A stretch of DNA of 64,000 nt from IMGVR_UViG_3300028864_000014:171319-235318; one strand, 5' to 3'. Counted from the stretch's first letter, positions 34,763 through 61,074 are shown. A program made the numbers and translations. Notes: generated by a model from the sequence alone, not told the origin.

Positions 34763-37700
34763 TTAGAAAATTATAATCGCATTAGCATTGTCATATCCAG
34801 TTTGTATTGCAATATCTAAAATAACTAAGTCAGTTAAAGCAGGTAAAGTTACTCCAACTAATGTTATTTCATCGTAAGTAATATCACTAATTGAAACAGT
34901 TACTCCTGAACAGTTAGTTGTTAATAATACTCTTGATATTGTTTTATCTGTTATCCATTGAAATCTTTGAGGACTTGGTGTGCTATTTGCTCCAATTTTA
35001 CTTAAAGATAAACTTTGAGGTATAATTGATGAATCAACAGTAATTCCATTTCCGTCAATACAAAGATGAATTTCACCACCATTAATAGGAGTAGGGTAAG
35101 AACCATCATTTTTCTTACAATAATATAATTTTCCTCCTGATATTTCAACAAACTGTCCTACACAATTATTATAAGTACCTCCATTTATCGTAGTAAATGA
35201 AGAAGATAATCCTTCACAATTAGTAAAAGTACCAGAGCAAATTCCATTAAAACTACCGTTATTCCCTTTACAATTTAAAAATGTACCAGTTAAATTATTT
35301 ACTTGAAAAATTAATACAGAATTTACATCTGTAAATGTTCCAGATAATGTATCAATTGAACTTGAAAATAATGGCAAATTATTAGAACTGAATATGTTTT
35401 TGAAAATACCTGAGCAATTAAAAATACCTGAAAACCCAGATCCCATTGTAATATTTATATTCTTAAATGTTCCAGATGCAGTAACATCACCATTAGTAGT
35501 ATCAGCTTGAATTTGTCCAGAGCAATTTTCAATATATAATTCTGGAAAATTTCCTGTTAGTTTTAAGCCACCGTCAATAAAGTTAATACCATTTATTTTT
35601 ATTTTATTATTAGTAATTATAACACCAGAACCACCAATATTTACATCGATATTTCCAGTAGATGAAACTAAATTTATATTTTGAGTATCTAAATTAAGAC
35701 TATCAGTTAGAAAACTATAATATCCAGGATATATAATAATATTAACTGGACTATCTGGTGCTGGTACTATAGCTTTCGCTATATTATACACATTTTGCAA
35801 TTCATTTCCATTTATTCCAGGATTACTATTTCCACCTTTTACTGTTAAAAATTGAGTTCCTATTGTTGGAGCAAAATCACCTCCCCCAATTATTTTTCCA
35901 TAACCGTCAATACATAATATAATTGTACCTCCACTTGAAGGTATTTCAAATGTACCTGGAGTAGTCAATCTACAATTATATAAACTTCCTGTTAATGCTC
36001 CACCTCGTGTAGAGTCACCAAAAGATTTACTTTTTGCTGTACAATTTATAAATGTTCCAGATGCAATACCATCAATTCCAAATGAAGTATTTCCAGCAGT
36101 ACAATTTATAAATGTTCCAGATACATTTGCTCCAACTTCATTTGTTCCAAATGAGAAATCTCCAGAATTACAATTAATAAATGTACCAGATAAAGATGTT
36201 GAAGAAAATCCAGTTTCAGCAGTACAATTTATAAATCTTCCAGATAAATCTCCATTCTCTCCATTAAACAACGCACCGTCTGATGTTATATTTTCAAAAT
36301 GACCAGGAAAGTCAGAAACACCTGATCCAAATGTGTTATTTGTTAATTTTAAATTTTTAAATGTTCCAGATAAAATAGTACTATTATCAATTGTGCTACC
36401 TTTAATTTGTCCTGAACAATTTTCAATCCTTAATCCAGGAAAATTTCCTCTTATTTCTAATCCCATACCTGTAAAATTTATACCAATTAATTTAATATTA
36501 TCTGTGATAATTAATATACCACTATAACCAATTTCAATATCTAATTCCCCTGTTGAAGAAATTAAATTTATATAAGGAGTATCTAAACTAATTAATGATG
36601 TCATTCCATAATAACCAGGATAAATAATTATATTAATTGGACTAATTATTGTTGGATTTAAAGCCTTAGCTATATTATAAACATTCTGTAACTCAGCTCC
36701 ATTTGTTCCAGGATCACTACTGATTCCTTTAACTGTTAAATATTGATTTCCATCTGATGGAGCAAAATCTCCTGCTCCTATTACTGCTCCATAACCGTCA
36801 ATACATAACAGAATAGTACCTCCACTTGAAGGAAGTCCAAATGTACCTGGCGTAGTCAATCTACAATTATATAAACTACCTGTTAATGTTCCACCTTGTT
36901 TAGAATCACCAAAAGATCCAGTATTACCTTTTGCTGTACAATTCACAAATGTTCCAGATGTCATACAATGAGCACCAAATGAAGAATTTCCAGCATTACA
37001 ATTAATAAATGTACCAGACACTTCTATTCCACTATTACCAAATGAATTATCACCAGAATTGCAATTAATAAAAGTAGTTCCAGATGATATAATACAACCT
37101 CCTCCTCCTCCAAATCCAGCATCATCACATGTACAATTTTCAAATGTCGCACCAGATGATATGACAGCTCCTCCTACACCAAATCCGTTTGCAGCATTAC
37201 AATTTTTGAATATACCAGATATAATTTTAGTATCATAAAATAAATTTCCACCTTTATGATATATATTTTCAAAATATCCAGATGCTTCTTGTATATAACC
37301 AAATCCATTACCATTAACTAAATTTATATCTTTAAAAGTTCCAGATAAATTAGTATCTGGATACGTTAAAATATTACCCCCATCTATCATTCCTGAACAA
37401 TTTTCAATCCATAACCCTGGAAAATTTCCAGTGAGTTTTAATCCACTACCTCCAAAAAATATACCTGTCAATTTAATATTATCTGAAATAACAATAGCGC
37501 CAGCAAATTCAATTTTAACATCTAATTCTCCTGTTGCTGATATTAAATTTATATAAGGAGTATCTAAACTAAGTCCATTAGACATTCCGTAATATCCAGG
37601 ATATATAATTATGTTTATAGGATTATTTGAACTCGGATTTATAGATTTTGCTAAATCATATACAGTTTGTAATTCCTCTCCATTTATTCCAGAATCAACA

Positions 37701-38770
37701 TTTTTTCCTTCAACAGTTAAATATTGAGCACCATCAGATGGAGCATAATTAGTTGGAATTCCAACTACATTAGTTGCTGATATATTTGTTATTTTTGATC
37801 CATCTCCACTCATTGTACCACCACTTACAACTAAATTACAATCTACTATTACATATCCAGTACTATTAATAGGTTTTATTGCTTCATAATCTGCATGTCT
37901 TATTGACTTTAATGCATCGCCAACATTATCTATTGTTATATTTGGATTGACACTTATCATATAAGACGTCATTGTTTCAAAATCAGAATTTAAAGGTACT
38001 CTCCAACCATCTGGATTATTTTGTATTAATGTGTTAGCTGCAAATAAGCAATATATTCTACCGTATATAACATTTATATCATTTTGAGTATATCCACTAG
38101 GCATGGTAAAAGGTAAATTAAATATTGCATAATCTTCTATAATATTTTCAATTGGATATTCAGCATAAGCAGGATATTGAGTACTAGTATTATACCACCA
38201 ATCATGATCATCCAAAGTTACTAATGAAGTTGTTGCAGATGATGCATAATCATATCCATTTATAACTCTTAAATTTTCTCTAGTCCAAATTTGAGTACCA
38301 ATTTTAACACAACTATATACATTTCCGTCTATATCTGTGAATCCAGATGAAATTATTTCTCCATCAGATAATAATGTTTCACCTGAAGTCGCTTCACGAG
38401 TTAGTCTTATTGAAAATCCATTATATCCAGACCATTCATTATATGAAATAGTAGATAATTGATTATCTAAAAGTGCAGCATAAAATTTAGTAGATGTACT
38501 ACCTGGTGTTGAAGTTCCAAAATAAGTTGAAAATCCGTTATTAAAATAAACTCCTTGGTTTCCTCTAATACCTGCTGTTACAGCGTCAAAATTATAATAA
38601 TCTTTTCCATATATATTATAATCCCCACTATACCACCAAAGAGGAAATTCAGTTGTAGTTCCAATAGTTGGTGGTACTTTTTCCCAATAACTTGCAGAAC
38701 TACTTCCAGTTAATCCGCTTTCAAATCCTCTAACCCATTCCTGACTAGCTAAATATATTATTTCACTCAT
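34763..38770 (-). CDS. large mosaic fibre/adhesin: LASxEWV tag, Fib_succ_major (FISUMP)-like region, three repeated beta-helix modules
   Basis: YLASQEWV; FTDIDGNVYSCVKIGTQIWTRENL..YGRIY..GWRVP; AP(S/T)xGxQYLTV..NGxELQxVY..IIIYPGYY x3; FINCxAG repeats. Confidence 0.8.
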   Translation of the reverse strand: MSEIIYLASQEWVRGFESGLTGSSSASYWEKVPPTIGTTTEFPLWWYSGDYNIYGKDYYNFDAVTAGIRGNQGVYFNNGFSTYFGTSTPGSTSTKFYAALLDNQLSTISYNEWSGYNGFSIRLTREATSGETLLSDGEIISSGFTDIDGNVYSCVKIGTQIWTRENLRVINGYDYASSATTSLVTLDDHDWWYNTSTQYPAYAEYPIENIIEDYAIFNLPFTMPSGYTQNDINVIYGRIYCLFAANTLIQNNPDGWRVPLNSDFETMTSYMISVNPNITIDNVGDALKSIRHADYEAIKPINSTGYVIVDCNLVVSGGTMSGDGSKITNISATNVVGIPTNYAPSDGAQYLTVEGKNVDSGINGEELQTVYDLAKSINPSSNNPINIIIYPGYYGMSNGLSLDTPYINLISATGELDVKIEFAGAIVISDNIKLTGIFFGGSGLKLTGNFPGLWIENCSGMIDGGNILTYPDTNLSGTFKDINLVNGNGFGYIQEASGYFENIYHKGGNLFYDTKIISGIFKNCNAANGFGVGGAVISSGATFENCTCDDAGFGGGGGCIISSGTTFINCNSGDNSFGNSGIEVSGTFINCNAGNSSFGAHCMTSGTFVNCTAKGNTGSFGDSKQGGTLTGSLYNCRLTTPGTFGLPSSGGTILLCIDGYGAVIGAGDFAPSDGNQYLTVKGISSDPGTNGAELQNVYNIAKALNPTIISPINIIIYPGYYGMTSLISLDTPYINLISSTGELDIEIGYSGILIITDNIKLIGINFTGMGLEIRGNFPGLRIENCSGQIKGSTIDNSTILSGTFKNLKLTNNTFGSGVSDFPGHFENITSDGALFNGENGDLSGRFINCTAETGFSSTSLSGTFINCNSGDFSFGTNEVGANVSGTFINCTAGNTSFGIDGIASGTFINCTAKSKSFGDSTRGGALTGSLYNCRLTTPGTFEIPSSGGTIILCIDGYGKIIGGGDFAPTIGTQFLTVKGGNSNPGINGNELQNVYNIAKAIVPAPDSPVNIIIYPGYYSFLTDSLNLDTQNINLVSSTGNIDVNIGGSGVIITNNKIKINGINFIDGGLKLTGNFPELYIENCSGQIQADTTNGDVTASGTFKNINITMGSGFSGIFNCSGIFKNIFSSNNLPLFSSSIDTLSGTFTDVNSVLIFQVNNLTGTFLNCKGNNGSFNGICSGTFTNCEGLSSSFTTINGGTYNNCVGQFVEISGGKLYYCKKNDGSYPTPINGGEIHLCIDGNGITVDSSIIPQSLSLSKIGANSTPSPQRFQWITDKTISRVLLTTNCSGVTVSISDITYDEITLVGVTLPALTDLVILDIAIQTGYDNANAIIIF

Positions 38771-38812
38771 AATTAATATTTTTTTTTATTTTCTTTATTT
38801 TTGAATATAAAT

Positions 38813-39172: not shown

Positions 39173-39192
39173 ATTATCAATTAATTTTTATA

Positions 39193-39937: not shown

Positions 39938-40354
39938 TTAAATGTTTTTAATTGCTACTGCATAAATTTCAAAAGCAGTTTCTGTAAATACCTGTTCATA
40001 AACAATTGTCCAAGTAGAATTGATTCCTAAAATAGGAATATTTCCACGCCAAACAACTCCAGTCGGTTGATAAATTGTAGGTACTGAGCTTCCTGTTTTG
40101 AATATTAAAATTGATTCATTAACTAACCCATTTGCTGGAGTAGGAAGAATAACAGTTATTGTGTTTCCACTCGATATTGTTCCAATATATGTTTCAGTCC
40201 AATTATCTAAATTTAAATTTCCAGTAGGAGAATTTATTTTTTTATATTTATATACAGTATTGATTGTGACTCCACTACCAATTGCAACAGTTAATCCACT
40301 GAAAATATCACTAACCCATTCTTCACTTGCTAAATGTATTATATCTGAAGCCAT
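39938..40354 (-). CDS. short fibre-associated protein with LASEEWV tag
   Basis: IHLASEEWV; GVVWRGNIP..WTIVY. Confidence 0.7.
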   Translation of the reverse strand: MASDIIHLASEEWVSDIFSGLTVAIGSGVTINTVYKYKKINSPTGNLNLDNWTETYIGTISSGNTITVILPTPANGLVNESILIFKTGSSVPTIYQPTGVVWRGNIPILGINSTWTIVYEQVFTETAFEIYAVAIKNI

Positions 40355-40357: not shown

Positions 40358-40687
40358 TTAAAATGTTATTTTATTTATAACGCCATTCATCATATAATTT
40401 ATAAATCCAGTTACTGTATCACCTTCGATCGTTACTGCAGATGCGATAAATTTATACACATCAGTTGGATTTACTAATGCTGGTTTTTTCAAATTATATG
40501 CTAATATTGCTTTGCTTACATCAGAAGGATTTGCAGTGTTTCCAGATGCGATTAATGCTAATATATCATTTTTAGCTGCAGTATCTCCAGAATTTGTACT
40601 TGATAATATTTTTTTCTGATCTTCTGTTGGAAATACTCGATCTTTTGGCATCCAAACTCCTTCACTTAGGGATATTAAATTTGTCAT
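40358..40687 (-). CDS. hypothetical late protein
   Basis: 109 aa; TTTATATATA upstream (40718-27). Confidence 0.7.
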   Translation of the reverse strand: MTNLISLSEGVWMPKDRVFPTEDQKKILSSTNSGDTAAKNDILALIASGNTANPSDVSKAILAYNLKKPALVNPTDVYKFIASAVTIEGDTVTGFINYMMNGVINKITF

Positions 40688-40763
40688 TTTTGTTATATTT
40701 TTTTTTGTTTATAATAGTATATATAAAAAACTCAAAGCAAAATAAGTCTATAATGATAAAAAA

Positions 40764-40793
40764 AAACTCAATTAACTATTATTAACTGAGTTT
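40764..40793 (-). terminator. ACTCAGTTAA-class palindrome (copy 1)
   Basis: Single mismatch is G-U only in minus-strand RNA, matching gene direction. Confidence 0.75.
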
Positions 40794-40811
40794 CTTATCT
40801 ATTTTTATATT

Positions 40812-43469
40812 TTATAAATTTGCATCTACAATAACCATTTTATCATAAATTAATTTTTGCTCTCCGTTTGAATTAACAAATAATTCTTTTGTGTAAGTAT
40901 TATAAATATACGTTGATGATGTTAAATCTAAATTAAAATAATTAAAATTGTCACATACAGTATTCATATTAAAATTACTACCAATTATAATATTTTGAAA
41001 ACTACTACCAATTGTGTTATTATTAAAACTATCACCAATAGTATTCTCAGAAAAATTACTACCAACAATATTATTCTTAAAATCTTCTCCAACTGTATTA
41101 GATTGAGAATAATTATTAATAGTATTATTTTTAAAATTATTTCCTACTGTAAATTCACAGCCACTACCGAATGTATTATATTGAAAATTGTCTAATGTTG
41201 TTAAATTACATTGACTTCCAATTGTATTATTTTGAAAATTACTACCGATTGTAAAATTGCATTGTCCAACAAATGTATTATTATAACAATTATCAGAAAT
41301 AGAACCGTTAATCTGACTACCAAAATTATTATTTGAAAATTGACTTCCTATTGTCAAATTACATTGATTTCCAAATACATTATCATAACAATTATCTCCA
41401 ATTGACAAATTACATTGACTACCAAATATATTATTAGAAAATCCTGATCCTCCTAATGACAAATTACATGAACTATTAAAAATATTATTGGAATAATTAT
41501 CACCTAGATTACATTTAGCCTGACTACCAAATGTATTATAACTAAAATAATTACCTAAAATACTATCTACAATAATTCCACCAAATATATTATACTGACA
41601 ATAATTTCCAATTTTGTTACGCACAAAATTGTTTTCAATTGTATTATTCCAAAAATCAGTACCAATTGTATCAAATTGACAATAATTTTTAAATGTATTA
41701 TATTTACTATTATTGCCTATATTAATCGTATTACATTGAATACCAAATATATTACCTTGTCCATTTAATATAGTAATATTTGAAGAGTTGCTTCCAATTG
41801 AATTATTAAAGCAACTACCAGAAAATATATTAAAGCTACATTGATATTCAATAACATTATTACTACAATTACCATCAAATGTATTATTCATACTATAACT
41901 TTCAATCGTATTATTAACATTATTAATACCAAATGTGTTACGAGAACATGAGTTTTTAATGATATTACTATTATTACCATTTCCAAATATATTATTACTG
42001 CACATGTTGCCTATTATATTATCATGAAAACTATTTCCTATTGTATTATATTGACAATCATGATCAATAATATTATCTTTACTATCATTACCAATTATAT
42101 TATAACTAAACTGGTGATTAATATTATTTTGATAAAAAGTAGTTCCAATTGTATTATTATAAAATGAATCTCCAATTGTATTATTATTAAAATTAGTATC
42201 TGTGGTATTATTACGATACTCATTTTTTATATTATTATATTGAAAATAATCTCTGTTTTTATTACTACCAAAATTATTTCCAATTATATTATCTGAAAAA
42301 TAGCTTTTGATATTATTATCTCCAAAATAATTTCCAGTTGTATTTGATACAAAATAATATCCAATACTATTATTTTGAAAACTTTTTCCAATATTATTAA
42401 AAATAAAATTATAGCTAATACTATTCTGATTGAAACTATTTTCTATTGTATTATTTTGAAAATCCATACCAATATTATTATTATAATATTGATTTATAAT
42501 ATTATTAAAAATAAAATTATTTCCAATAATATTATCAAAAATATAATCACCAATATTATTATTTTGAAAAAAATCACCAACACTATTATTATTAAAATAA
42601 TTTCCAATTATATTATTTTGAAAATAACCACCTATGCTATTATTAATAAAATTATTTCCAATAATTTTATTATATTGAAAATAACTTCCAAAAATTATAG
42701 TATTTTTATTGCTTATAATATCACCATTATTGGTATTACTATTATGTTGTTCTATCTTATTAGAATGAGAATAATTATAATTATTAATATCAGACCACAT
42801 ATTATAGTCAGTGTAACCTGTACTACATGAAATGTTTGAATTCCCAATGCTCCATACATTTTCAGTTGGACTCACATAAGACAAGTTATTCCATTTAAAT
42901 TGATTCCAATTATATGAAAAATTATTATCTCCAATAGTATTATTATATAAACAAATATAAATTGATCCATTGTATAAAACAACATCATTTTTTTGATATG
43001 TTGTTCCTGAATTCCAAACATTATTTACAATTATCTGCCATCTTCTAAATTTAACTTGTCTAAAATCAAATGATATATCATTATCTTGAATCGTATCTAT
43101 TCTTCTATAAATATATCCATATTGACAGCCAGGTACCATATTAGAATCATTTCTATAATTATAATATATTATATCCTGAGGATATAAACTTGAATGAGCC
43201 TCAACATTTAATGTATTAAAACTACTTGATATTACCAATAACGGTTCATTTATACCGTAATTAATATCACTTGTGTTTGTTATCTGATGTACTGTTTGAT
43301 AATCAGTAATCAAATATGCTTGGTTAGGAATTAAACTATTCGAGTTAATTAAATTTAGTAAATCATTATAAGTTAAATCTATAACTGATGTTCCGCCAGA
43401 ACCTCCACCTGTGGATCCAGTCAATTGACTATTAACCCACTCTTCACTAGCTAATTGAATATTTATCAT
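40812..43469 (-). CDS. Family F beta-solenoid fibre/adhesin (F5, 885 aa)
   Basis: MINIQLASEEWV; [43 protein letters not shown]; dozens of 9-11 aa NxIGxxF repeats; YTKELFV..YDKMVIVDANL. Confidence 0.8.
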   Translation of the reverse strand: MINIQLASEEWVNSQLTGSTGGGSGGTSVIDLTYNDLLNLINSNSLIPNQAYLITDYQTVHQITNTSDINYGINEPLLVISSSFNTLNVEAHSSLYPQDIIYYNYRNDSNMVPGCQYGYIYRRIDTIQDNDISFDFRQVKFRRWQIIVNNVWNSGTTYQKNDVVLYNGSIYICLYNNTIGDNNFSYNWNQFKWNNLSYVSPTENVWSIGNSNISCSTGYTDYNMWSDINNYNYSHSNKIEQHNSNTNNGDIISNKNTIIFGSYFQYNKIIGNNFINNSIGGYFQNNIIGNYFNNNSVGDFFQNNNIGDYIFDNIIGNNFIFNNIINQYYNNNIGMDFQNNTIENSFNQNSISYNFIFNNIGKSFQNNSIGYYFVSNTTGNYFGDNNIKSYFSDNIIGNNFGSNKNRDYFQYNNIKNEYRNNTTDTNFNNNTIGDSFYNNTIGTTFYQNNINHQFSYNIIGNDSKDNIIDHDCQYNTIGNSFHDNIIGNMCSNNIFGNGNNSNIIKNSCSRNTFGINNVNNTIESYSMNNTFDGNCSNNVIEYQCSFNIFSGSCFNNSIGSNSSNITILNGQGNIFGIQCNTINIGNNSKYNTFKNYCQFDTIGTDFWNNTIENNFVRNKIGNYCQYNIFGGIIVDSILGNYFSYNTFGSQAKCNLGDNYSNNIFNSSCNLSLGGSGFSNNIFGSQCNLSIGDNCYDNVFGNQCNLTIGSQFSNNNFGSQINGSISDNCYNNTFVGQCNFTIGSNFQNNTIGSQCNLTTLDNFQYNTFGSGCEFTVGNNFKNNTINNYSQSNTVGEDFKNNIVGSNFSENTIGDSFNNNTIGSSFQNIIIGSNFNMNTVCDNFNYFNLDLTSSTYIYNTYTKELFVNSNGEQKLIYDKMVIVDANL

Positions 43470-43594
43470 ATATTAAAAAATTATTTATTCTATATATTAA
43501 AAATTAGAAATAAAAATAATTTTTTAAGAAGATTTAACTATTGATAATTGTCAATTTTTTAAAAGGAGTTTATGGTATAAATATATATACTTAT

Positions 43595-44838: not shown

Positions 44839-45342
<504 letters not shown>

Positions 45343-45492: not shown

Positions 45493-46266
<774 letters not shown>

Positions 46267-46267
<1 letters not shown>

Positions 46268-46677
46268 TGACAAAAGAAGAATTAAGTGATTTTATATTGG
46301 AGACATTAAAAAAATGCTATAAAGTTAAACATGAGGATTATCCAAGTATAATTTTTTGGATATATGATGAACAATTCATTAGAAAAATTAAATTAGGCAA
46401 AATAAATAATCAAGACATAAAAATTACAAATGAAATTAACGGAACTTGTATATTTCAACAAGATTTTAAAAAATTAAAATTTCGTTGTAATGATGATATT
46501 TGGACTTTTTTATTCAGATACTATTCCGATGATTACTATGATAATCAGAAATTCATGAAAGATATACTAAAAAATATTACTAATTTAAATATGTATTTAC
46601 CAACAATGAATTCATCAACAGCTAATATATCATTGAAAAATTACAAGAAAATAAGTTTATATTTAAATGATGTATAA
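46267..46677 (+). CDS. Family X paralog, array 3/13
   Basis: same motif set. Confidence 0.85.
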
Positions 46678-47065
46678 AAAAGATTTATATGATTGGTTCT
46701 GGAATAAATATAATTCCTGCTATCAAGTTAAAGTAGAATTATATCCAGATAGTGTATTCTTAGTTTATGACGAAAAATATATAAGAAAACTTAAATTGTT
46801 TAAATTAAATAATACAGAAGAGTTAATTTCAATTAATAATGTTGAAGGAACATTTTTATTTAATCAGGATAATAAATTTAGAATTTTATGGCTGAGTGAA
46901 GAATTGTGGAAGTTCTTTGAAAAAAACTATTCATATGACTACTATGATATTCAAAAACTAATAAAAAAACTACTAAAAGATCATCCAATTTTATTCGATT
47001 ATAATCCTTTACCTGGTATGATTAAAAATATATATGAAAATAGTATTATAAAATCAAGATTATAA
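46667..47065 (+). CDS. Family X paralog, array 4/13
   Basis: same motif set. Confidence 0.85.
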   Translation: MMYKKDLYDWFWNKYNSCYQVKVELYPDSVFLVYDEKYIRKLKLFKLNNTEELISINNVEGTFLFNQDNKFRILWLSEELWKFFEKNYSYDYYDIQKLIKKLLKDHPILFDYNPLPGMIKNIYENSIIKSRL

Positions 47066-47985
<920 letters not shown>

Positions 47986-47989
47986 TAAT

Positions 47990-50626
<2,637 letters not shown>

Positions 50627-50634
<8 letters not shown>

Positions 50635-51091
50635 AGAAGAATTATCAAATTGGTTGATTAGCAAAATTTTATATTGCTATCCAGTAGTAGATAAAGAATG
50701 GAATGATTACGTTTTTTATTTCTATGACGAACAATATATTAGAAAACTTAAATTGTTTAAGTTATATAATATAAAAATAACATCGCCAAATCAAGTTAAT
50801 GGAATATGCTTATTTAGTTTAAATATTAAATATAAAATTATTTACTTTCATTATGAATATGTTTGGAAATTCTTTGAAAATAATTATATAAATAATTATA
50901 TACAAATTGAAAAATTTATAACTGAAATTATAAATGATTATAAACAACTAAATAAGTATTCACCAAAAAAAAATTCACAAGGATTTAGATATCCTGAACT
51001 AATAAGAAGTAAGAAAAATTTAGAAATTAGAGAAGCTGATTGGTCATCTCTACTTCCAAGTTCATATAAAAAATTAATAGTATTGAAATAA
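50627..51091 (+). CDS. Family X paralog, array 13/13
   Basis: same motif set. Confidence 0.85.
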
Positions 51092-51121
51092 AAAAACTCA
51101 GTTAAATTAACTGAGTTTTTT
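51091..51121. terminator. ACTCAGTTAA-class palindrome (copy 2), bidirectional
   Basis: AAAAAACTCAGTTAA-a-TTAACTGAGTTTTTT between convergent genes. Confidence 0.85.
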
Positions 51122-51124
51122 ATT

Positions 51125-52870
51125 TTATGCATTTGCATTAACAATAGTATTTCTATCGTATGCTAACTTTTGAATCACAGATGAATCAACATATAAATCT
51201 TTTGTGTAACTATTATAAATATATGTAGATGCTGTAAAATCTGATAAATGATAATTGTTAATACCAACATCATAATTACCAATATTGAAATTATCACAAA
51301 CATTATTCATCTTAAAATTGCTACCAATTACATTACGATTAAACGCGTTACCAATAGTATTATAGCTAAAAACATTTCCAATGTTATTGATGTCAAATCC
51401 ATTTCCAATAGTATTAAATTGAAAATAATTCCCAATAATATTACCATTAAAATATCCACCAAAAGAATTTCCTGTATTATTATTTTGAAAATTAGAACCA
51501 ATCCTATTATTTTGCGAGCCATTTCCAATAGTATTACATAGAGCAGCATATCCAATACTATTATAACTAAAATATGATTCAATAGTATTACGAGAAAACG
51601 CTTCACCAATATAATTATGAATAAAATATTCTCCAATACTATTATAAAAAAACACATCTGAAATAGTATTATATTGAAACATGCTTCTTATTGTATTATT
51701 ATAAAAACTAGCTCCAATACTATTATTCATAATATTACTTTCAATTGTATTAAATGTAAAATTAACTCCGATACTATTGTGTTCAAAATTTCCTCCTATT
51801 GTATTATTAAAAAAACTAGCTCCAATACTATTATAACTAAAATATGATTCAATTGTATTGCAGTTAATATTATTTCCAAAAAATACAGTATTATTACAAT
51901 TAAGTATATCTCCATCTCCAATGTAATCTTGTTTTATTCTATTAGAATAAATTGTACTATCATATGTATTAAACATCAGATAATCAGTATATAAAGTGGA
52001 TGTTGGAATACTAAAATAAAGATACCAATTTGTTATATTTGGACTAGAATAACTTAAATTAGCCCATTCAAAACGTTTCCAAATAATTTGATTTGTTTGT
52101 GTTGATGGATTCACACCAATTACATTATCAATTAAACATATATAAATTTGTGTTGTCCCACTGATTAAAACAACATCACTTCTCATATATGTTGATCCTG
52201 AATTCCAAATGTTTGTAACATTCAATTGCCATCTTCTAAATTTTACTTGTCTGAAGTCAAATGGAATATCATTATTTTTTAATGTATCAACTCTTCTATA
52301 AATATATCCTTTTGCACATCCAGGCATCATACTTTGATTATTATTGAAATCATAATATATTATATCATTCGGATATAATCTTGAATACGTCTCAGGCTTT
52401 AATGTATTAACACTACTTGCAGTTACTAATAAAGGTTCTGTTGTTCCTGAATTTATAATAGTTGTTTCAGGTATTCTATGTATAGTTTGATAATCAGTAA
52501 TTAAATATGCTTGATTAGTAGTTAATCCACTATTATTAATTAATGTTACTAATCCACTATATGTGACATTTGTAACTGAATTTGTACCTCCACTAGAACT
52601 TATACTAATACCTGATGTTCCTGATGTACCATTTTGTCCAGAACTTCCATATCCAACTGAACCATTCTGTCCTGAAGTTCCTGACGTTCCTGAATTACCG
52701 GAACTTCCTGTGTTTCCAGTTGATCCATTCTGTCCAGATGTTCCAGATTTACCTGCTGTTCCACTAGTCCCATTTTGACCTGATGTACCAGAGGTGCCTG
52801 TTGATCCACCTGTTGTTCCAGATAATCTTCCTTCAACCCATTCTTCACTCGCTAACTGTATATTTACCAT
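51125..52870 (-). CDS. Family F beta-solenoid fibre/adhesin (F4)
   Basis: MVNIQLASEEWV, GTSG linker, core domain, NxIG repeats, conserved C-terminus. Confidence 0.8.
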   Translation of the reverse strand: MVNIQLASEEWVEGRLSGTTGGSTGTSGTSGQNGTSGTAGKSGTSGQNGSTGNTGSSGNSGTSGTSGQNGSVGYGSSGQNGTSGTSGISISSSGGTNSVTNVTYSGLVTLINNSGLTTNQAYLITDYQTIHRIPETTIINSGTTEPLLVTASSVNTLKPETYSRLYPNDIIYYDFNNNQSMMPGCAKGYIYRRVDTLKNNDIPFDFRQVKFRRWQLNVTNIWNSGSTYMRSDVVLISGTTQIYICLIDNVIGVNPSTQTNQIIWKRFEWANLSYSSPNITNWYLYFSIPTSTLYTDYLMFNTYDSTIYSNRIKQDYIGDGDILNCNNTVFFGNNINCNTIESYFSYNSIGASFFNNTIGGNFEHNSIGVNFTFNTIESNIMNNSIGASFYNNTIRSMFQYNTISDVFFYNSIGEYFIHNYIGEAFSRNTIESYFSYNSIGYAALCNTIGNGSQNNRIGSNFQNNNTGNSFGGYFNGNIIGNYFQFNTIGNGFDINNIGNVFSYNTIGNAFNRNVIGSNFKMNNVCDNFNIGNYDVGINNYHLSDFTASTYIYNSYTKDLYVDSSVIQKLAYDRNTIVNANA

Positions 52871-52908
52871 TAATTTTTTTTATTTGTATATATTAAAAAA
52901 CAATAAAT

Positions 52909-53343: not shown

Positions 53344-55305
53344 TTATTTTTGAAATTCATAAGCTCCAATATCAATAGTAGTTCCACTAATTCTATTATT
53401 TGATTTTACATCAAAAACAGATCCATAACCAGAAGTATTATCGCTATTTATTCCGTTGTCTATTAAAAAAGATTGTTCTGAAATATTAAGATTACAAACT
53501 AATACATCATCTACTACTCCTGAATTTAAAGATATTATATCAAAATAAGGACTATTAGTATCTCCACTATTATTAGTAGAAATTGATATATTTCCAATAC
53601 CTGGTCGTTCGTCATTTTCAAATGCAGAATATTCTTCAATACTTGAATTTGTATTAACTACATTATTTTGAGTTCCAGCTATTGATTTATTTCCCCAAAC
53701 TACAGTATTCTTTAATACACAGTTATTTGTACCACCTCCTGAATTTCTGACAACTGAACAATTTATAAGATTAGCAGATTCTGCTCCTCCAACTAGACTT
53801 GCTCCGTAGTTGTTAAAAATTGAGCATGATATTAATGTTCCACCACTTACTCCTCCTACATTACCATTTGAATAATTATTATATACAATTGAACTGATCA
53901 AATTTGAATTATATGATCCTGCTGAGTAACTTAAATAGTTAAGAGATTCATTAGAGTTAATAGAGCAATTTACTAAATTCGAAATAAAAAGTGTTGTTCC
54001 TTTAGCAGCAGTGCTAATGTTTTTATTTATATCAGAATTTGAAAATGATGATAAAAAACCTGCTGAAACACTTCCAACTGTAGAATTATTACTTATAAAG
54101 CAGTTCGTTAGTGATGAATTTATTGCTCCTGCTGATCCACTATATCCATATCGGTCTCCCATATCAGAATTAACTGTTCCAGTATTAACATTACTTGAAA
54201 TTATAGAATTACTAATTGATGAATTTATAACTCCTACTCCACCATTTATATTTCCAATTGATGAATTAAAAGATACTAAGCAGTTATTAAGATTTGCTCC
54301 ATAAACACCACTCCATGATGAATACCAGTAATCGTAAGATTCAATATTATTAATTATTTGACAATTTGATAATATTAATGTACCTGAAGAATGAATTCCT
54401 GCACATAAATATGGTATTGAGTCATTGAAAGAATCCGATATTTGAAATCCGTTTACAACTGATTTTATACCTGAACTACAATAAAGAGTAGTATATGAAG
54501 AAGTTATCTGAGAACCTAATAAATTACCAGACATTATACTTTTATTTTTTGGTACAGGAACAAATAAATCTATATTTCCAGATGGTAATCTTAATATTTC
54601 TTTGTAAGATACCATATCACGCTCATATAGAGAACTTTCAGTACCAATAAATCCTCCGAATATATTTATTCCAGTCTTAAGAAGAAATGATGCAGATCTG
54701 GCATCTCCAATTGTTCTTAATGTAGTAGGTAAATAAGTAATTCCACTTTCAGATCCTTTAACAAAAATTGCATCACCAGAATTTGACAAATCAATAGCTG
54801 TTTGAATATTCTTATACGAATTTGTCCATGATAATCCATCATTAGTATCTAATCCATTATCTCCATCAACATATCTTATAACTGAACCTATTATCTCAAA
54901 TCCATTTTCATCAATTCCAACAGTAGCGATATTTTTATAAATAAGTCCTAGCCTCCAAGTAATGCCATTATCTGATGATGACATTGTATACATATATTCA
55001 CCTACTTCTGTTGGATATTCTAAATTGTCAAATAAAAAATTATTTGGAAAACTTAATGACACATAATCGTTAAGTTTAATTTTTAAATATAATTGAACAT
55101 ATTTACTCATATCAACATTTCCTGTATTTACAGTTACTGTTAATCCTGACGCTGTTGATATATCATATACTTTAATATTCTTGTCTAATATAATAGAACC
55201 TGATACAACTTGTTCAGTGTTATATTGAATTGTGTTACCATCTGTTAAATTTCCTACTATATCAGTTACCCAGTTTTGATTAGCTAAATATATTATTTCA
55301 TCCAT
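53344..55305 (-). CDS. right-handed parallel beta-helix (pectin-lyase-like) tail spike/adhesin
   Basis: IYLANQNWV tag; YVDGDNGLDTNDGLSWTNSYKNIQTAID; GINIFGGFIGTE; terminal RISGTTIDIGAYEF (choice-of-anchor Q-like). Confidence 0.8.
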   Translation of the reverse strand: MDEIIYLANQNWVTDIVGNLTDGNTIQYNTEQVVSGSIILDKNIKVYDISTASGLTVTVNTGNVDMSKYVQLYLKIKLNDYVSLSFPNNFLFDNLEYPTEVGEYMYTMSSSDNGITWRLGLIYKNIATVGIDENGFEIIGSVIRYVDGDNGLDTNDGLSWTNSYKNIQTAIDLSNSGDAIFVKGSESGITYLPTTLRTIGDARSASFLLKTGINIFGGFIGTESSLYERDMVSYKEILRLPSGNIDLFVPVPKNKSIMSGNLLGSQITSSYTTLYCSSGIKSVVNGFQISDSFNDSIPYLCAGIHSSGTLILSNCQIINNIESYDYWYSSWSGVYGANLNNCLVSFNSSIGNINGGVGVINSSISNSIISSNVNTGTVNSDMGDRYGYSGSAGAINSSLTNCFISNNSTVGSVSAGFLSSFSNSDINKNISTAAKGTTLFISNLVNCSINSNESLNYLSYSAGSYNSNLISSIVYNNYSNGNVGGVSGGTLISCSIFNNYGASLVGGAESANLINCSVVRNSGGGTNNCVLKNTVVWGNKSIAGTQNNVVNTNSSIEEYSAFENDERPGIGNISISTNNSGDTNSPYFDIISLNSGVVDDVLVCNLNISEQSFLIDNGINSDNTSGYGSVFDVKSNNRISGTTIDIGAYEFQK

Positions 55306-55355
55306 TTATATTTTTATTTCTATATATAAATTAAATAAAATTAACAATTGAAAAT

Positions 55356-55391
55356 AAAAAACTCAGTTAAAATATTTTAACTGAGTTTTTT
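55356..55391. terminator. ACTCAGTTAA-class palindrome (copy 4), perfect 36 bp
   Basis: AAAAAACTCAGTTAAAAT|ATTTTAACTGAGTTTTTT. Confidence 0.85.
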
Positions 55392-55406
55392 TAGGTATTT
55401 TATGAG

Positions 55407-57197
55407 TTAAGCATTTGCACTCACAATAACAGTCTTATCATATATTAACTTTAACTGTGATGAAGAATTACTAAATATTTCTTTTGTATATGAATTATAA
55501 ACATAAGTAGATGATAAAAAATTTGTTCCAGTAACACCACATTGAATAAAATTGTGAGCAAAATTACTTCCTATTGTATTACCACTAAATGTCTCTATTA
55601 TTGAATTATTTGTAAAATAATTTCCTACTGTATTAATACCAAAATAATTTGATATTGAATTATGTCCAAAATCAGTTCCTATTATATTAGTACCAAATCC
55701 ACTTTTTATTGTATTATACATAAAATTAGTTCCTATTGTATTAGCACCAAAATTACTTCCTATTGAATTATATCCAAAATTAGTTCCTATTTTATTATTA
55801 CCAAAATTTCCTCCTATTACATTCAAAGAAGAATTGTTTCCTATCGTGTTAGTACCAAAATTTCCTCCTACCACATTTAAAGTGAAAGCGTTTCCTATTA
55901 TATTATATCCAAAATTGATATCTATAATATTATTAGTGAGTCCATATCCTATAAAATTAAATTGACAATTACGTTCAATTGAATTATAAGTAAAACTATC
56001 ACCTATTACATTAAAATTAAAACTATTTCCTATTGTATTATCAGAAAAACTTCCTCCTATTGAATTAATAGCGAAACTGTTTCCTAATTTATTTTTATTA
56101 AATGCATATGAAATAGAATTATTATAAAAACTATCTCCTATTGTATTAGTATTAAAACTATTTCCTATTGTGTTCTCATAAAAATTGTTTCCTATAGTAT
56201 TATTATAAAAACCAGATCCAAGTGTGACTGAATTATTGTTTGATATTATATTTGTTGATGACTGTTCAATTGAAATATTGAAACTCGATGAATAATCCCA
56301 AAACATATTATAATCTGTATATCCAGTCGAACATGGAATATTAACACTGAACAAAGCCCAACTATTTTTATATGGACTTGTGTAACTTAAATTACCCCAT
56401 TCAAATAATTTCCAAATTGAATCAATGGATGGATCAATTCCAGTCACAAGATTATTCATACAAATATAAATCTTAGTTGTTCCACCACTTAAAACAACAT
56501 CATTCTTATTGTATGTCGTACTATTATTCCAAATGTTAGTAACATTCAATTGAAATCTTCTGAACTTTACCTTTCTAAAATCAAAAGGTATGTCATTAAC
56601 CTGAATTGTGTCTATCCTTCTATAAATATATCCTTTAGTACAACCAGATACCATACTTTGATTATTAGTATAATTATAATAAATAATATCCTGAGGATAT
56701 AATGCTGAATATGCTTCTGGTTTTAATGAATTAATACCACTTGCTGTAACTAATAAAGGTTCTGTTGTTCCTGAACTTAACTCAGTTGTTTTAGGAATTA
56801 CATATACTGTCTGATAATCTGTTATTAAATATTGATTACCTATTGTTAATCCATTTGAAGATATTAAATTAGATAAACTATTATATGTCAAATTTGTAAC
56901 TGTACTTGTACTTCCACTAGGAGAATTACCAGATGTTCCAGATGTTCCTGAACCTGATGTACCAGAAGTTCCTGAATTTCCAGCAGATCCATTCTGTCCT
57001 GAAGTTCCTGACGTTCCTGAATTACCAGAACTTCCTGTGTTTCCAGTTGATCCATTCTGTCCAGATGTGCCTGATCTACCTGCTGTTCCACTAGTTCCAT
57101 TTTGACCTGATGTACCAGACGTACCTGTTGATCCACCTGTTGTTCCAGATAACCTTCCTTCAACCCATTCTTCACTCACCAATTGAATATTTATCAT
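55407..57197 (-). CDS. Family F beta-solenoid fibre/adhesin (F3)
   Basis: MINIQLVSEEWV; first ~190 bp nearly identical to F4. Confidence 0.8.
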   Translation of the reverse strand: MINIQLVSEEWVEGRLSGTTGGSTGTSGTSGQNGTSGTAGRSGTSGQNGSTGNTGSSGNSGTSGTSGQNGSAGNSGTSGTSGSGTSGTSGNSPSGSTSTVTNLTYNSLSNLISSNGLTIGNQYLITDYQTVYVIPKTTELSSGTTEPLLVTASGINSLKPEAYSALYPQDIIYYNYTNNQSMVSGCTKGYIYRRIDTIQVNDIPFDFRKVKFRRFQLNVTNIWNNSTTYNKNDVVLSGGTTKIYICMNNLVTGIDPSIDSIWKLFEWGNLSYTSPYKNSWALFSVNIPCSTGYTDYNMFWDYSSSFNISIEQSSTNIISNNNSVTLGSGFYNNTIGNNFYENTIGNSFNTNTIGDSFYNNSISYAFNKNKLGNSFAINSIGGSFSDNTIGNSFNFNVIGDSFTYNSIERNCQFNFIGYGLTNNIIDINFGYNIIGNAFTLNVVGGNFGTNTIGNNSSLNVIGGNFGNNKIGTNFGYNSIGSNFGANTIGTNFMYNTIKSGFGTNIIGTDFGHNSISNYFGINTVGNYFTNNSIIETFSGNTIGSNFAHNFIQCGVTGTNFLSSTYVYNSYTKEIFSNSSSQLKLIYDKTVIVSANA

Positions 57198-57249
57198 AGT
57201 TAATTTTATTTCTATATATAAATTAAACTAACTGATTAAACAATAAATA

Positions 57250-57278: not shown

Positions 57279-57296
57279 AATTTTTTATAAATCTAA

Positions 57297-58874
57297 TTAT
57301 TCAATGACATCTACTATTGTTGTCACATCATATACTAACTTGTTAAGCCCTGTTGAATCAACATATAAGTTTTTAGTATAGGCTAAATAGATATATGTTG
57401 ATGATGATAAATCTAATCCAGATCCAAAATTATCACATATATTGTTCATAGTAAAATTACTTCCAATTGTATTAGTATTAAAGTTACTTCCAATTGAATT
57501 ATTTTGAAAGTTACTTCCAATTGAATTATAATTAAAATCACTTACAATTGTATTACCACTAAAAATACTTTCAATAGAATTATTATTAAAATTACTTCCA
57601 ATTGCATTTCTTTCAAATCCATATCCAATTGAAGTATTAGTATTAAAATCACTTCCAATTGAATTTTTTTGAAAGTTACTTAATATAGTATTATATTGAA
57701 AGTTGCTTCCTATATTATTATATTGATAATAATTATCCACACTATTAAAATTGAAATTATTTGAAATTGTATTATAGTTGAAATTTGCGCCAATTGTATC
57801 ATTATTGGAAAATAGACTTCCAATTGAATTATTATTAAAATTATTTCCAATATTAGAGTTGGAACTAAAATCTGCTCCAATTAAATTATTATAAAAACTA
57901 CTTGCAATATTATTACTAGTAAAATTACCTCCAATTATATTATTGTAAAAATTATTTGAAATTGTATTATAGTTGAAATTATTTGAAATTGTATTACCAC
58001 TAAAATTAATATCAATATTATTATTTTGAAAATATGATTCAATATTATTAGAGTTAAAATTATCTCCTATGTTGTCATTTTTATTAAAATCACTTCCAAT
58101 TATATTATTGTAAAAATTATTTGAAATTGTATTATGGTAAAAATTATTTGAAATTGTATTACCACTAAAAAATTTTCCAATTGAATTATACATAAAGTAA
58201 TTTTCAATACTATTATCATTAAAATTGTCTCCTATTGTATTACCTGAAAAACCAGTTCCTATTTTATTATTCTTAAAATTGCTTCCTATTGTATTACTAT
58301 TAAAACCATCTCCTATTGTATTATCACGAAAATTACTTCCTAAAATTATAGAATTATTTTGATCTATTCTATAATTTAGTGCTCCTATTTTATTATTAAA
58401 AGCAGTTGAATAATCAACAAAAAAATTATAAACTGTAACTCCACTACTTATATAATTATTTACAATCTTAAAATTTCTAAAATCAAAAGGCATATCATTA
58501 TTCTGTATTGTATCTATCCTTCTATAAATATATCCTTTAGTAGAACCATGTATAACATTAGTATTATTATTGAAATCATAATATATAATATCCTTAGGAT
58601 ATAATGCTGAATATGCTTCTGGTTTTAATGTATTAACTCCACTAGCTGTTACTAATAAAGGTTCAATTATACCAGTGAAAGTATTTCCATAATATGCATC
58701 AATATAAATAGTCTGATAATCTGTAATCAAATACTGACTTCCAATTGTTAATACACTATTATTAATCAAATCGCCCAATTCATTATATGTAACATTAGTT
58801 ACTGAAGAACCACCAGTACCTCCGCCTAATTGTCCTTCAACCCACTCTTCACTTGCTAATTGTATATTTATCAT
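57297..58874 (-). CDS. Family F beta-solenoid fibre/adhesin (F2)
   Basis: MINIQLASEEWV; core lacks the RRWQ insert; very regular 9-aa repeats. Confidence 0.8.
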   Translation of the reverse strand: MINIQLASEEWVEGQLGGGTGGSSVTNVTYNELGDLINNSVLTIGSQYLITDYQTIYIDAYYGNTFTGIIEPLLVTASGVNTLKPEAYSALYPKDIIYYDFNNNTNVIHGSTKGYIYRRIDTIQNNDMPFDFRNFKIVNNYISSGVTVYNFFVDYSTAFNNKIGALNYRIDQNNSIILGSNFRDNTIGDGFNSNTIGSNFKNNKIGTGFSGNTIGDNFNDNSIENYFMYNSIGKFFSGNTISNNFYHNTISNNFYNNIIGSDFNKNDNIGDNFNSNNIESYFQNNNIDINFSGNTISNNFNYNTISNNFYNNIIGGNFTSNNIASSFYNNLIGADFSSNSNIGNNFNNNSIGSLFSNNDTIGANFNYNTISNNFNFNSVDNYYQYNNIGSNFQYNTILSNFQKNSIGSDFNTNTSIGYGFERNAIGSNFNNNSIESIFSGNTIVSDFNYNSIGSNFQNNSIGSNFNTNTIGSNFTMNNICDNFGSGLDLSSSTYIYLAYTKNLYVDSTGLNKLVYDVTTIVDVIE

Positions 58875-58910
58875 TTATCATTTTATTTCTATATATAAAT
58901 TAACAAACTA

Positions 58911-58944
58911 AAAAACTCAGTTAAATTATTTTAACTGAGTTTTT
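58911..58944. terminator. ACTCAGTTAA-class palindrome (copy 6)
   Basis: AAAAACTCAGTTAA-attatt-TTAACTGAGTTTTT. Confidence 0.85.
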
Positions 58945-58946
58945 GT

Positions 58947-59561
58947 TTAATTAATATCAGATGTTATATTTAACGATTGATCAAATATTCCCTCACAATA
59001 CATATACTTATTGTCCAATTTTATAATATATAAAATACTATCAATATTTAAATCAGATGATGCAAAATCCTTTATACATTTAAAAGATTCTTTATGAATA
59101 GCATAACTATGAGTGAATAATTTACCTGGAATTTTTTCAATTCCTTTATGTACTTTATCTCTGAATATTCCTTTAATGATATTATTCTCCTTCCTGAATT
59201 GTATCATATTATCAAAATAAAATAAATTCCAATTATTGTTCTTTAAAAAATTAAAACAAATATCTAAATGATAATCTAATTTTTTTTCAATCTCTATGTT
59301 ATCCTGATTAAAACAAACATCATCCTCAAATATAAATATCTTATCATAATCATTTTCTATAGCATCATCTATACAACTAATATGAGATGATTTACAAGAT
59401 TTAGTAGAACTAATATCATCAGTGATAGGAACAATTTTCTTATATTTAGTTATATTTAATATTCTAAACATATTCATTATGTTATCATATCTATCAGTCC
59501 TAATTGGTAAATTTATAAAATATACCATATCAAAATATTCAAAATAATTATGCAGTAGCAT
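58947..59561 (-). CDS. glycosyltransferase family 25
   Basis: VYFINLPIRTDR, SCKSSH, IFIFEDD, WNLFY, THSYAI, IFDQ..SDI. Confidence 0.85.
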   Translation of the reverse strand: MLLHNYFEYFDMVYFINLPIRTDRYDNIMNMFRILNITKYKKIVPITDDISSTKSCKSSHISCIDDAIENDYDKIFIFEDDVCFNQDNIEIEKKLDYHLDICFNFLKNNNWNLFYFDNMIQFRKENNIIKGIFRDKVHKGIEKIPGKLFTHSYAIHKESFKCIKDFASSDLNIDSILYIIKLDNKYMYCEGIFDQSLNITSDIN

Positions 59562-61074
59562 CTACTATTGTTACTTTATCATAAATTAATTTTCTTTGAC
59601 CTGATGAATTAACAAATAAATCTTTAGAATATTGATTATAAACATGAGTGGATGATGTGAAATTTAATCCACTATGATCAAAATTAAAATAATCACAAAC
59701 ATTATTCATTGTAAAATTGCTTCCAATTGTATTACTATTAAAATAACTTCCAATTGTATTATATTGAAAATTACTTCCAATTGTATTACTATTAAAATAA
59801 CTTTCTATACTATTATTTTGAAAATACATTATAATATTATTAAATGTAAATACATTTTCAATCGTATTATTTTGAAAATTACTTCCGATAGTATTATAAT
59901 AAAAATTACCAAAAATAGTATTATTATTAAATAAACTTCCTATACTATTATTTTGAAAAGCATTTCCAATTGTATTATACTGAAAATTATTCAAAATTGT
60001 ATTCCAATTAATCATACCTCCAATTGTATTAAATCTAAAATTTATTCCAATAATATTACTGTCAAAATAATCATCTATTGAATTATTTTGAAAAAAATCA
60101 TCTAATAAATTATCAGAAAAATTGTTTTTTATTGAATTATTATTAAATCCAAAACCAATCAAATTATTGAAAAAATATGAACCTATTTTATTAAAACTAA
60201 ATGAATTAAAAATAGTATTGTTGAAAAAATATGAACCTATTTTATTGTTATTAAATTGATAACCAAATATTACATTATTTGAATATGTAATCATATCTGA
60301 TCCATATATATTTGACATAGGAATTAAAAATTGTTTATCTATAATATTATTAAAACTAGTATTATAATCATTCCAATTACTCCACATATTATAATCTGTA
60401 TAACCAGTAGAACAAGGTAAATATAAAGCATTAAACTGATATCCTACACTTGTCGTACTTACATATGATTTGTTACTTATCATATAAAATGTATTCCAAT
60501 AATTAGTATTACTTAACTGATTACCTGTATTTCCACTTACTATACTAACATACAGAATATTATTTGTATTACCGCTTAAAACAACATTATTACGATTATA
60601 TGTTGTTCCAGAATTCCAAACTTCACTAACATTTATTTGCCATCTTCTAAACTTAACATTCCTAAAATCAAAAGGAATATCATTGTTCTGTGCAGTATCT
60701 ATCCTTCTATAAATGTAACCTTTAGTACATCCAATTACCATAGTCTGATCACTATAGTAATTATAGTAAATTATATCCTGAGGAAATAAACTTGAATATG
60801 CCTCAGGCTTTAATTTATTAACTCCACTTGCTGTAACTAATAAAGGTTCTGTCATTCCACTATTTATATCAGTTGTATTAGGTATCTTATGTACTGTTTG
60901 ATAATCAGTAATTAAATATTGTCCACCAATAGTTAAATTATTAGTATTAATTAATGATGTTAATTCATTATATGTAACATCAGTTACTGAATTTGTGTTG
61001 CCTGTTGATCCACCAGTACCTCCGCCAAACTGTTCCTCAACCCATTCTTCACTTGCTAATTGTATATTTATCAT
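59548..61074 (-). CDS. Family F beta-solenoid fibre/adhesin (F1)
   Basis: MINIQLASEEWV; core, repeats and C-terminus as other F genes. Confidence 0.8.
   Translation of the reverse strand: MINIQLASEEWVEEQFGGGTGGSTGNTNSVTDVTYNELTSLINTNNLTIGGQYLITDYQTVHKIPNTTDINSGMTEPLLVTASGVNKLKPEAYSSLFPQDIIYYNYYSDQTMVIGCTKGYIYRRIDTAQNNDIPFDFRNVKFRRWQINVSEVWNSGTTYNRNNVVLSGNTNNILYVSIVSGNTGNQLSNTNYWNTFYMISNKSYVSTTSVGYQFNALYLPCSTGYTDYNMWSNWNDYNTSFNNIIDKQFLIPMSNIYGSDMITYSNNVIFGYQFNNNKIGSYFFNNTIFNSFSFNKIGSYFFNNLIGFGFNNNSIKNNFSDNLLDDFFQNNSIDDYFDSNIIGINFRFNTIGGMINWNTILNNFQYNTIGNAFQNNSIGSLFNNNTIFGNFYYNTIGSNFQNNTIENVFTFNNIIMYFQNNSIESYFNSNTIGSNFQYNTIGSYFNSNTIGSNFTMNNVCDYFNFDHSGLNFTSSTHVYNQYSKDLFVNSSGQRKLIYDKVTIVDATA

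Follow-up and report, generated by a model that had tools for sequence, protein, structure and literature searches.

The final 64 kb of the 235,318-bp IMG/VR virus record IMGVR_UViG_3300028864_000014 (the record, hereafter G000, and its final 64 kb, the window, to which coordinates refer unless stated otherwise) carry eight genes whose proteins begin with almost the same short peptide and continue into several different bodies. Comparison of these proteins supports the view that the peptide is a transferable N-terminal module, held under purifying selection at the protein level on bodies that are unrelated. We consider it moderately probable that the peptide serves as a lineage-specific minimal N-terminal virion anchor, by which many interchangeable receptor-binding proteins would be attached to a contractile-tailed peat phage with a genome of about 0.7 Mb.

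The phage is known from metagenomes. CheckV gives the record a completeness of 33%, which leads to the genome estimate of ~0.7 Mb, and related proteins are found on contigs as large as 711,471 bases, another such contig having 433,905 bases. The guanine plus cytosine content is ~23%, and the stretch is present in at least 13 peat-metagenome runs. G000 encodes a tail sheath of 1,200 amino acids (aa) and has a gp5-like spike gene (oligonucleotide/oligosaccharide-binding fold plus M23), from which we conclude that the tail is contractile. Relatives encode T4-type portal and prohead-protease genes, and in one relative the portal gene adjoins the fiber cluster. The IMG/VR contig G001 overlaps the last 48 kb of G000 at 99.97% identity and runs 56.8 kb past the end of the record, so that G000 and G001 together give ~292 kb of this phage, or roughly 40% of the estimated genome. 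For comparison, we used a diverged relative (G002) and a more distant one (L050).

All eight open reading frames (ORFs) lie on the minus strand and start with M, one to three further residues, and then I-[Q/I]-(Y/H)-L-[A/V]-[S/N]-[E/Q]-[E/N]-W-V. An initial annotation, made from the sequence of the window, had reported eight proteins with a shared peptide inside the first ~12 residues; we recovered all eight ORFs, and the peptide occupies residues 4-14 in every one. The peptide comes in two classes, namely class 1 (x-N-I-Q-L-A-S-E-E-W-V) and class 2 ([SD]-[ED]-I-I-[YH]-L-A-[SN]-x-x-W-V), and the classes are interchangeable because orthologs of the class-2 protein B138 in relatives bear the class-1 peptide. 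The eight genes, with the position of the peptide in each, are as follows.

A1335, gene 34763-38770 (minus strand): class-2 peptide IIYLASQEWV at 38732-38761, then a linker, a Fib_succ_major domain and three internal repeats.
B138, gene 39938-40354 (minus strand): class-2 peptide IIHLASEEWV at 40313-40342, then a small domain of ~115 aa.
C885, gene 40812-43469 (minus strand): class-1 peptide IQLASEEWV at 43434-43460, then a linker and an extended F body, with a CBM_5_12 match.
D581, gene 51125-52870 (minus strand): class-1 peptide IQLASEEWV at 52835-52861, then a collagen-like stalk and an F body.
E653, gene 53344-55305 (minus strand): class-2 peptide IIYLANQNWV at 55267-55296, then a non-F body, possibly a right-handed β-helix.
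F596, gene 55407-57197 (minus strand): class-1 peptide with A replaced by V, IQLVSEEWV, at 57162-57188, then a collagen-like G-X-Y stalk and an F body.
G525, gene 57297-58874 (minus strand): class-1 peptide IQLASEEWV at 58839-58865, then a linker and an F body.
H508, gene 59548-61074 (minus strand): class-1 peptide IQLASEEWV (MINIQLASEEWV) at 61039-61065, then a Gly/Ser/Thr linker and an F body.

The motif L-[AV]-[SN]-[EQ]-[EN]-W-V, written as a degenerate DNA pattern, matched the window eight times, against 0.00 matches expected from 100 shuffles. A six-frame regular-expression scan of the whole record returned only these eight and one spurious loose match. Throughout G000 the motif is present as a single copy per protein, always N-terminal and never internal, and it lacks the G-Y-L-T half-unit that accompanies it in the repeat proteins described below.

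The bodies behind the peptide are diverse. By BLAST, C885, D581, F596, G525 and H508 share one body (F) at 39-66% identity, while A1335, B138 and E653 match neither F nor one another; the eight proteins thus have four unrelated bodies, in agreement with the "at least four" of the initial annotation. In the F body, a conserved N-domain of ~200 aa precedes many nine-residue (27-nucleotide) repeats of the form N-x-I-G-x-x-F-x-x, predicted to form a β-helix, and one F-body relative is annotated as a tail fiber in Clostridium phage phiCT453A. Examples in the F-body genes lie at window positions 41500-42700, 55500-56200, 57400-58400 and 59650-60200. An AlphaFold2 (AF2) model of H508 had a predicted local distance difference test score (pLDDT) of 75, with the body domain above 90 and residues 1-26 below 50 and detached from the body; within the latter, residues 2-16 were weakly predicted as a helix. 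A Foldseek search of the PDB with the AF2 model of the F body gave no match with an E-value below 0.7, and no known fold could be assigned to this body. A1335 matches Fib_succ_major (PF09603, 43 bits) and has internal repeats in addition. E653 has no Pfam or PHROG match, and its ESM Atlas model (predicted template modeling score 0.74) has right-handed β-helix proteins as neighbors, which at template modeling scores of 0.45-0.58 is a lead only. A further lead concerns B138, whose Atlas neighbors are small C-terminal domains of phage tail fibers that in other phages sit behind Mtd_N, T4_gp9_10_N or Tail_spike_N anchors; an AF2 model of B138 built from four sequences was unusable (pLDDT 37). At the level of homology, the bodies resemble fiber-, lectin- or depolymerase-like modules rather than internal head proteins.

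Directly after the peptide, a Gly/Ser/Thr-rich linker is found in the F proteins and in A1335 and is less clear in E653 and B138. In D581 and F596, collagen-type G-X-Y repeats follow the peptide, with PF01391 scores of 28.1 and 29.4 bits, respectively (cut-off 27.2).

At the amino-acid level, the five F paralogs are 91% identical over their first 13 residues and 54% identical over the body. Of the positions with the same residue, a share of 0.71 in the peptide and 0.70 in the body also has the same codon. The synonymous sites of the peptide are therefore as diverged as those of the body, which points to purifying selection on the protein, and this codon test rules out conservation as a nucleotide element or through recent gene conversion.

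The peptide recurs in the adjoining part of this phage and in its relatives. Beyond the end of the record, G001 has two further peptide genes, encoding a protein of 799 aa in which Fib_succ_major is combined with an F body, and one of 333 aa (a possible β-propeller that is possibly monomeric, as a lead only), which brings the number of peptide genes in G000 and G001 to at least ten; the reversed pattern, used as a control, gave 0 matches. G002 encodes six peptide-bearing proteins (811, 400, 441, 300, 283 and 710 aa), five of which have an identical class-1 peptide and the last of which, the 710-aa protein, has MSEAIYLASELWV. L050 has an F body preceded by MAINIQLATQEWV and a Fib_succ_major body preceded by MSTIQIASEEWV. 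Scans of IMG/VR and of Joint Genome Institute metagenomes recovered the peptide mainly in this peat contig group, and always at the N-terminus, which indicates that it is lineage-specific. One more N-terminal copy was present on an unrelated record (L066), and no N-terminal copy was found on the marine contig L057. Among cultured phages, tblastn with the first 29 residues found no match in 50,697 records, and a PDB profile search with the peptide returned only the nanobody framework "EWVS" among solved structures.

The same F body is also found behind entirely different N-termini, of which the nearest example is encoded in the window.

F0, gene 24174-26066 (minus strand), 630 aa: F body with a T4 gp9/gp10-type N-terminal anchor of ~45 aa and an FSGTTG linker.

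The initial annotation had assigned this body and anchor to F0 and had concluded that anchors and bodies swap, and both statements hold. The F body of F0 is found by BLAST, and the T4_gp9_10_N family (PF07880) matches F0 and a second protein, g143364, at 26.1 bits each (cut-off 25); in F0 the match is confined to the first 54 positions of the model, whereas in g143364 it reaches up to 133. Ten relatives share the motif G-x-x-P-N-D-G-T-G-D-x-L-R ... N-F-N-E-V-Y without variation. This gp10-type N-terminus is present on four F-body paralogs of the phage (F0, g143364, and proteins of 612 and 627 aa on G001), and a further F-body protein, g69089, has a third N-terminal type. In metagenomes, 119 F-body proteins have ~60 different N-termini, and 15 F-body relatives begin 12 or fewer residues before the body, essentially without an N-terminal module. 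Because the F body is found with other N-termini or essentially none, it does not need the peptide in order to fold. The peptide and the gp10-type module both join the F body via the same (L/F)-S-G-T-T-G linker; the peptide thus occupies the same position as known anchors, before the same linker. It is not a truncated gp10_N domain, as hhalign paired only the shared FSGTTG linker, with a probability of 0.5%. In a tree of the body domain, all peptide-type and gp10-type proteins fall in one clade with their labels interleaved; about three changes of each anchor label are needed, of which well-supported branches force only one. Within the F0 linker, window 25255-25371 (minus strand) consists of near-perfect 18-nucleotide tandem repeats (96% identical) that encode a Gly-Ser-Ser tract, which suggests a recent expansion and a variable linker length.

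Short N-terminal docking peptides are an established principle in phages. Secondary receptor-binding proteins are docked by short conserved N-terminal peptides in SP6/K1-5-, KP34-, KP32-, Menlow- and phiK64-1-type phages (PMC6872550), and these peptides are group-specific and range from 7 to ~29 residues, as in the hepta- and undecapeptides of SP6/K1E/K1-5, the "MALxxLV" of KP34 and the first 29 aa of KP32 (PMC6872550). In the Klebsiella podophages of the KP32 type, the second protein no longer enters the virion when its first 29 residues are removed (PMC13352976). The docking peptides bind a T4gp10-like branching domain or an adapter (PMC6872550; PMC13352976). The likeness to the peptide studied here is considerable: a tiny, group-specific conserved N-terminus with a variable rest on several receptor-binding proteins per phage, a peptide that is movable between bodies, and a second class of proteins with a larger true anchor. 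On the other hand, those phages are podoviruses with one to four such proteins, whereas here a myovirus of ~0.7 Mb has at least ten, in two sub-classes and with an unrelated peptide sequence; docking in the Klebsiella podophages was validated by experiment, and here no T4gp10-like branching domain was detected in the available DNA.

A second group for comparison includes CBA120, G7C, RaK2/phiK64-1 and phiKp24, in which 4-14 receptor-binding proteins per particle are attached via conserved N-terminal modules (PMC10253068, PMC9700779). CBA120-type phages also resemble our phage in the contractile tail of their particles and in the reuse of parts derived from the T4 baseplate. In CBA120 and RaK2, docking relies on folded head domains, each of ~100 aa, which attach to T4 gp10-like (XD) domains (PMC10253068), as opposed to ~12 residues here, where XD domains were not found. 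The T4 gp9/gp10 N-domain (PF07880) itself stands in the same place and before the same SGTTG linker, without any sequence relation to the peptide. Outside of phages, the trimeric adenovirus fiber has a short conserved N-terminal peptide as its sole attachment to the penton base, in a eukaryotic virus with one fiber type and without sequence relation to the phage peptide. The principle put forward in the initial annotation is therefore already known; the present case differs in the sequence, the scale, the kind of phage and the absence of a detectable gp10 domain 2 or 3 in the ~292 kb and in relatives.

In the arrangement that we favor, each protein would be built from the peptide (~12 aa), a flexible Gly/Ser/Thr linker or collagen-like stalk, and a variable body, which could be of the β-rich F type, a Fib_succ_major lectin-like domain, a β-helix, a small fiber-tip-like domain or possibly a β-propeller. 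Once the oligomer has formed, its N-terminal peptides would slot into a conserved site of a second virion protein, or extend that site by a strand or helix, and new heads could be mounted by recombination at the linker while the particle remains unchanged. We infer the binding to a virion partner, the identity and number of the sockets, and the oligomeric state of the bodies that lack collagen repeats. A single "universal" virion site may be common to all of the peptides.

Several results weigh against this anchor reading, beginning with the search for a socket. No partner for the peptide was found in the ~292 kb of this phage. Such peptides are known to dock on platforms formed by T4 gp10 domains 2 and 3. 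Domain 2 (PF23618) had no match in G000, G001 or G002, and domain 3 (PF22670) had none in these three or in five additional contigs with a sheath gene 65-86% identical to that of the phage, although remote homologs could escape such searches; in a control Pfam scan, both families matched T4 gp10 itself strongly. A protein search seeded with the gp10_N motif found only fiber-like proteins without gp10 domains 2 and 3. Sheath-linked contigs of the wider clade had no F body. From the "minimal universal socket" proposed in the initial annotation, the transferable N-terminal module thus stands, and the partner that would make it a socket was not found. Moreover, seven near-identical peptides would be indistinguishable to a socket, which excludes an architecture of one fiber for one site and implies many equivalent sites or mixed occupancy. 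A bolder version of the anchor reading, which we think improbable, holds that the peptide is the sole anchor of at least ten receptor-binding proteins, on a "hairy" virion (sheath, capsid lattice or a repeated hub) or in a stochastic mosaic of heads on each particle, and that it is a co-opted single fiber-shaft repeat unit that completes the fiber layer of its partner, unlike platforms made of gp10 domains. If such a mosaic were true, it would amount to host-range bet-hedging at the level of the single particle.

The core of the peptide also occurs as an internal repeat in other proteins. Among 1.84 billion representative proteins, a profile of its first 17 columns matched a few N-terminal copies and a set of proteins with the core repeated internally at regular spacing. 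These repeats have the consensus G-L-A-[ST]-x-x-W-V-x-x-x-G-[YF]-[LV]-T and recur every 20, 34 or 45 aa. The proteins (P0124-P0127, P0131, P0135 and P0136, from other phage contigs, L101-L104) have no Pfam family and no PDB match, and two lie on phage contigs, one of them T4-like and the other a phage-like contig of 389 kb. Aligned with hhalign, the peptide and the repeat core gave a probability of 96% over 12 columns, a value that is partly circular, since it was the peptide profile that led to the repeats. In the tandem-repeat proteins, the core is a structural unit rather than a docking tag. The two share a (nearly) identical seven-residue core and both occur on phage contigs; the repeat proteins have it internally in four to eight copies, while here a single copy lies at the extreme N-terminus, with a linker in place of the G-Y-L-T half. 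The full tandem unit of ~20 aa is absent from the peptide proteins, and no second copy was found in the 235 kb. A similar case is the tail fiber gpH of phage P2, for which the initial annotation had placed an LATxxYV/WV-like segment in the N-terminal region. The segment MATQDYV is present and shares the hydrophobic-A-[ST]-x-x-[WY]-V core in a trimeric tail fiber, but at residue 147, internal and after the N-terminal region, whereas nothing precedes the peptide here. In sequence, the peptide resembles a single unit, or half of one, of a generic fiber element.

Because the core matches a repeat unit, some weight is gained by a structural role as a trimer cap, which the initial annotation had itself named as the refuting alternative and which is a serious competitor to docking. 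The peptide would then be an intrinsic element, one unit of a widespread shaft repeat serving to nucleate, register or cap the N-terminal end of a homotrimer, with no common partner and with attachment elsewhere, and we regard this as rather unlikely. It would fit the four- to eightfold recurrence of L-A-[ST]-x-x-W-V in unrelated phage proteins, the internal segment of P2 gpH, the collagen repeats right after peptide and linker in D581 and F596, and the weak AF2 helix at residues 2-16. It fits less well with an F body that is conserved behind quite different N-termini or, in the 15 relatives, essentially none, with a motif that is neither internal nor repeated in this phage, and with the flexible linker that separates peptide from body. 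The bodies are also of very different predicted architecture, including the possibly monomeric 333-aa protein (a lead), and since known anchors are themselves trimeric, trimerizing and docking are compatible.

Two other readings carry less weight. The peptide could be a tag for a shared assembly factor, that is, a fiber chaperone or a modifying enzyme such as a GT25 glycosyltransferase or a 109-aa protein of the cluster, and we hold this to be very unlikely. A GT25 gene does lie between G525 and H508, relatives keep glycosyltransferases in their fiber clusters, and small conserved ORFs (109, 119/130 and 88 aa) stand beside fiber genes, the 109-aa protein next to F fibers in three places; yet the 109-aa protein is also found beside a gp10_N-type fiber without the peptide, the chaperone would also have to serve F bodies whose anchors lack the tag, and the small proteins have no homology to known fiber chaperones. 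The least credible reading, to which we give hardly any weight, is that the conservation reflects a nucleotide element (a translation start or recombination cassette), or a propeptide or capsid-targeting signal cut by the prohead protease. Promoter-like boxes and terminator hairpins do flank the genes, with cassette-like 5' ends, and relatives have T4-type portal and prohead-protease genes. The prohead cleavage consensus is S/A/G-x-E in phiKZ-type phages and (L/I)-x-E in T4-type phages, and the A-S-E of the peptide would fit the former. Against this reading, synonymous divergence is equal in peptide and body, the bodies are fiber-, lectin- or depolymerase-like, and a T4-type signal is rejected as no (L/I)-x-E site is present and E653 (A-N-Q-N) lacks even S/A/G-x-E.

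The fiber genes share flanking elements. A box, ATATATA[GC]A, lies 22-31 nucleotides upstream of start codons; for six peptide genes and F0 the distance is 22-28 nucleotides, with the boxes at the following window positions.

26086-26094 (minus strand): box upstream of F0.
43489-43497 (minus strand): box upstream of C885.
52885-52893 (minus strand): box upstream of D581.
55319-55327 (minus strand): box upstream of E653.
57211-57219 (minus strand): box upstream of F596.
58888-58896 (minus strand): box upstream of G525.
61089-61097 (minus strand): box upstream of H508.

The same box precedes the tail-sheath gene, and 16 of the 42 boxes in the 235-kb record lie 18-36 nucleotides before the start of an ORF, including those of the sheath, of proteins of 717 and 628 aa, of F0 and of the six peptide genes. 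The box is probably a late promoter, and its presence at both fiber and sheath genes suggests co-regulation with structural genes. No Shine-Dalgarno-like sequence was seen. The F genes also have conserved 3' ends and downstream hairpins (AAAAACTCAGTTAAA ... TTTAACTGAGTTTTT) at window 40754-40927, 51067-51240, 55349-55522 and 59490-59663. Box, peptide and 3' hairpin bracket each fiber gene much like a cassette.

Other genes of the cluster may relate to the fibers. The GT25 glycosyltransferase gene (window 58947-59561, minus strand; PF01755, 33 bits) lies near the collagen-like fibers, and the fiber cluster of L050 retains GT25 and Gly_transf_sug genes; glycosylation of the Ser/Thr-rich linkers or of the collagen-like stalks is possible. 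The 109-aa protein is encoded beside F-body genes at window 40358-40687 (minus strand), at G000:C1:143003-143332 (plus strand) and at L050 9666-9995, adjoins both peptide-type and gp10_N-type fibers, and has a conserved N-terminus, N-L-I-S-L-S-E-G-x-W-M, with a loose likeness to the peptide; a chaperone or adaptor role is conceivable. In window 28991-34748 (minus strand), three paralogous β-helix-like proteins of 570, 503 and 525 aa have a weak DUF1565 match, and each of their genes is preceded by a small ORF (88-aa paralogs). Neither the peptide nor a recognizable anchor was found in these three proteins, which resemble a second receptor-binding-like family that would be attached by other means.

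The fiber cluster is split by thirteen tandem small paralogous ORFs of 116-168 aa, at window 45493-51091 (plus strand), 44839-45291 (minus strand) and 61491-62683 (plus strand). They share the N-terminus M-[NT]-K-E-E-L-S-x-W-F-x-N-K-F-N-S-C-Y-P, have no Pfam or PHROG match, and have further copies in G001 and G002. In G001, more than 20 small paralogous leucine-rich-repeat proteins (PF12799 LRR_4, phrog_21719), with the N-terminus M-K-Y-I-K-K-F-E, form tandem arrays around the extra fiber genes (G001:C1:34000-50500 and 23800-25100).

As a simple sequence tag, the peptide offers a means of spotting receptor-binding proteins in such unannotatable genomes. If it is an anchor, one of the largest known phage lineages would follow a plug-and-socket rule, and this would explain a large repertoire of exchangeable heads that includes at least ten peptide-type, at least four gp10-type and three anchor-less β-helix proteins. 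It would also extend the docking-peptide principle from small podophages to huge environmental myophages, possibly with another kind of socket.

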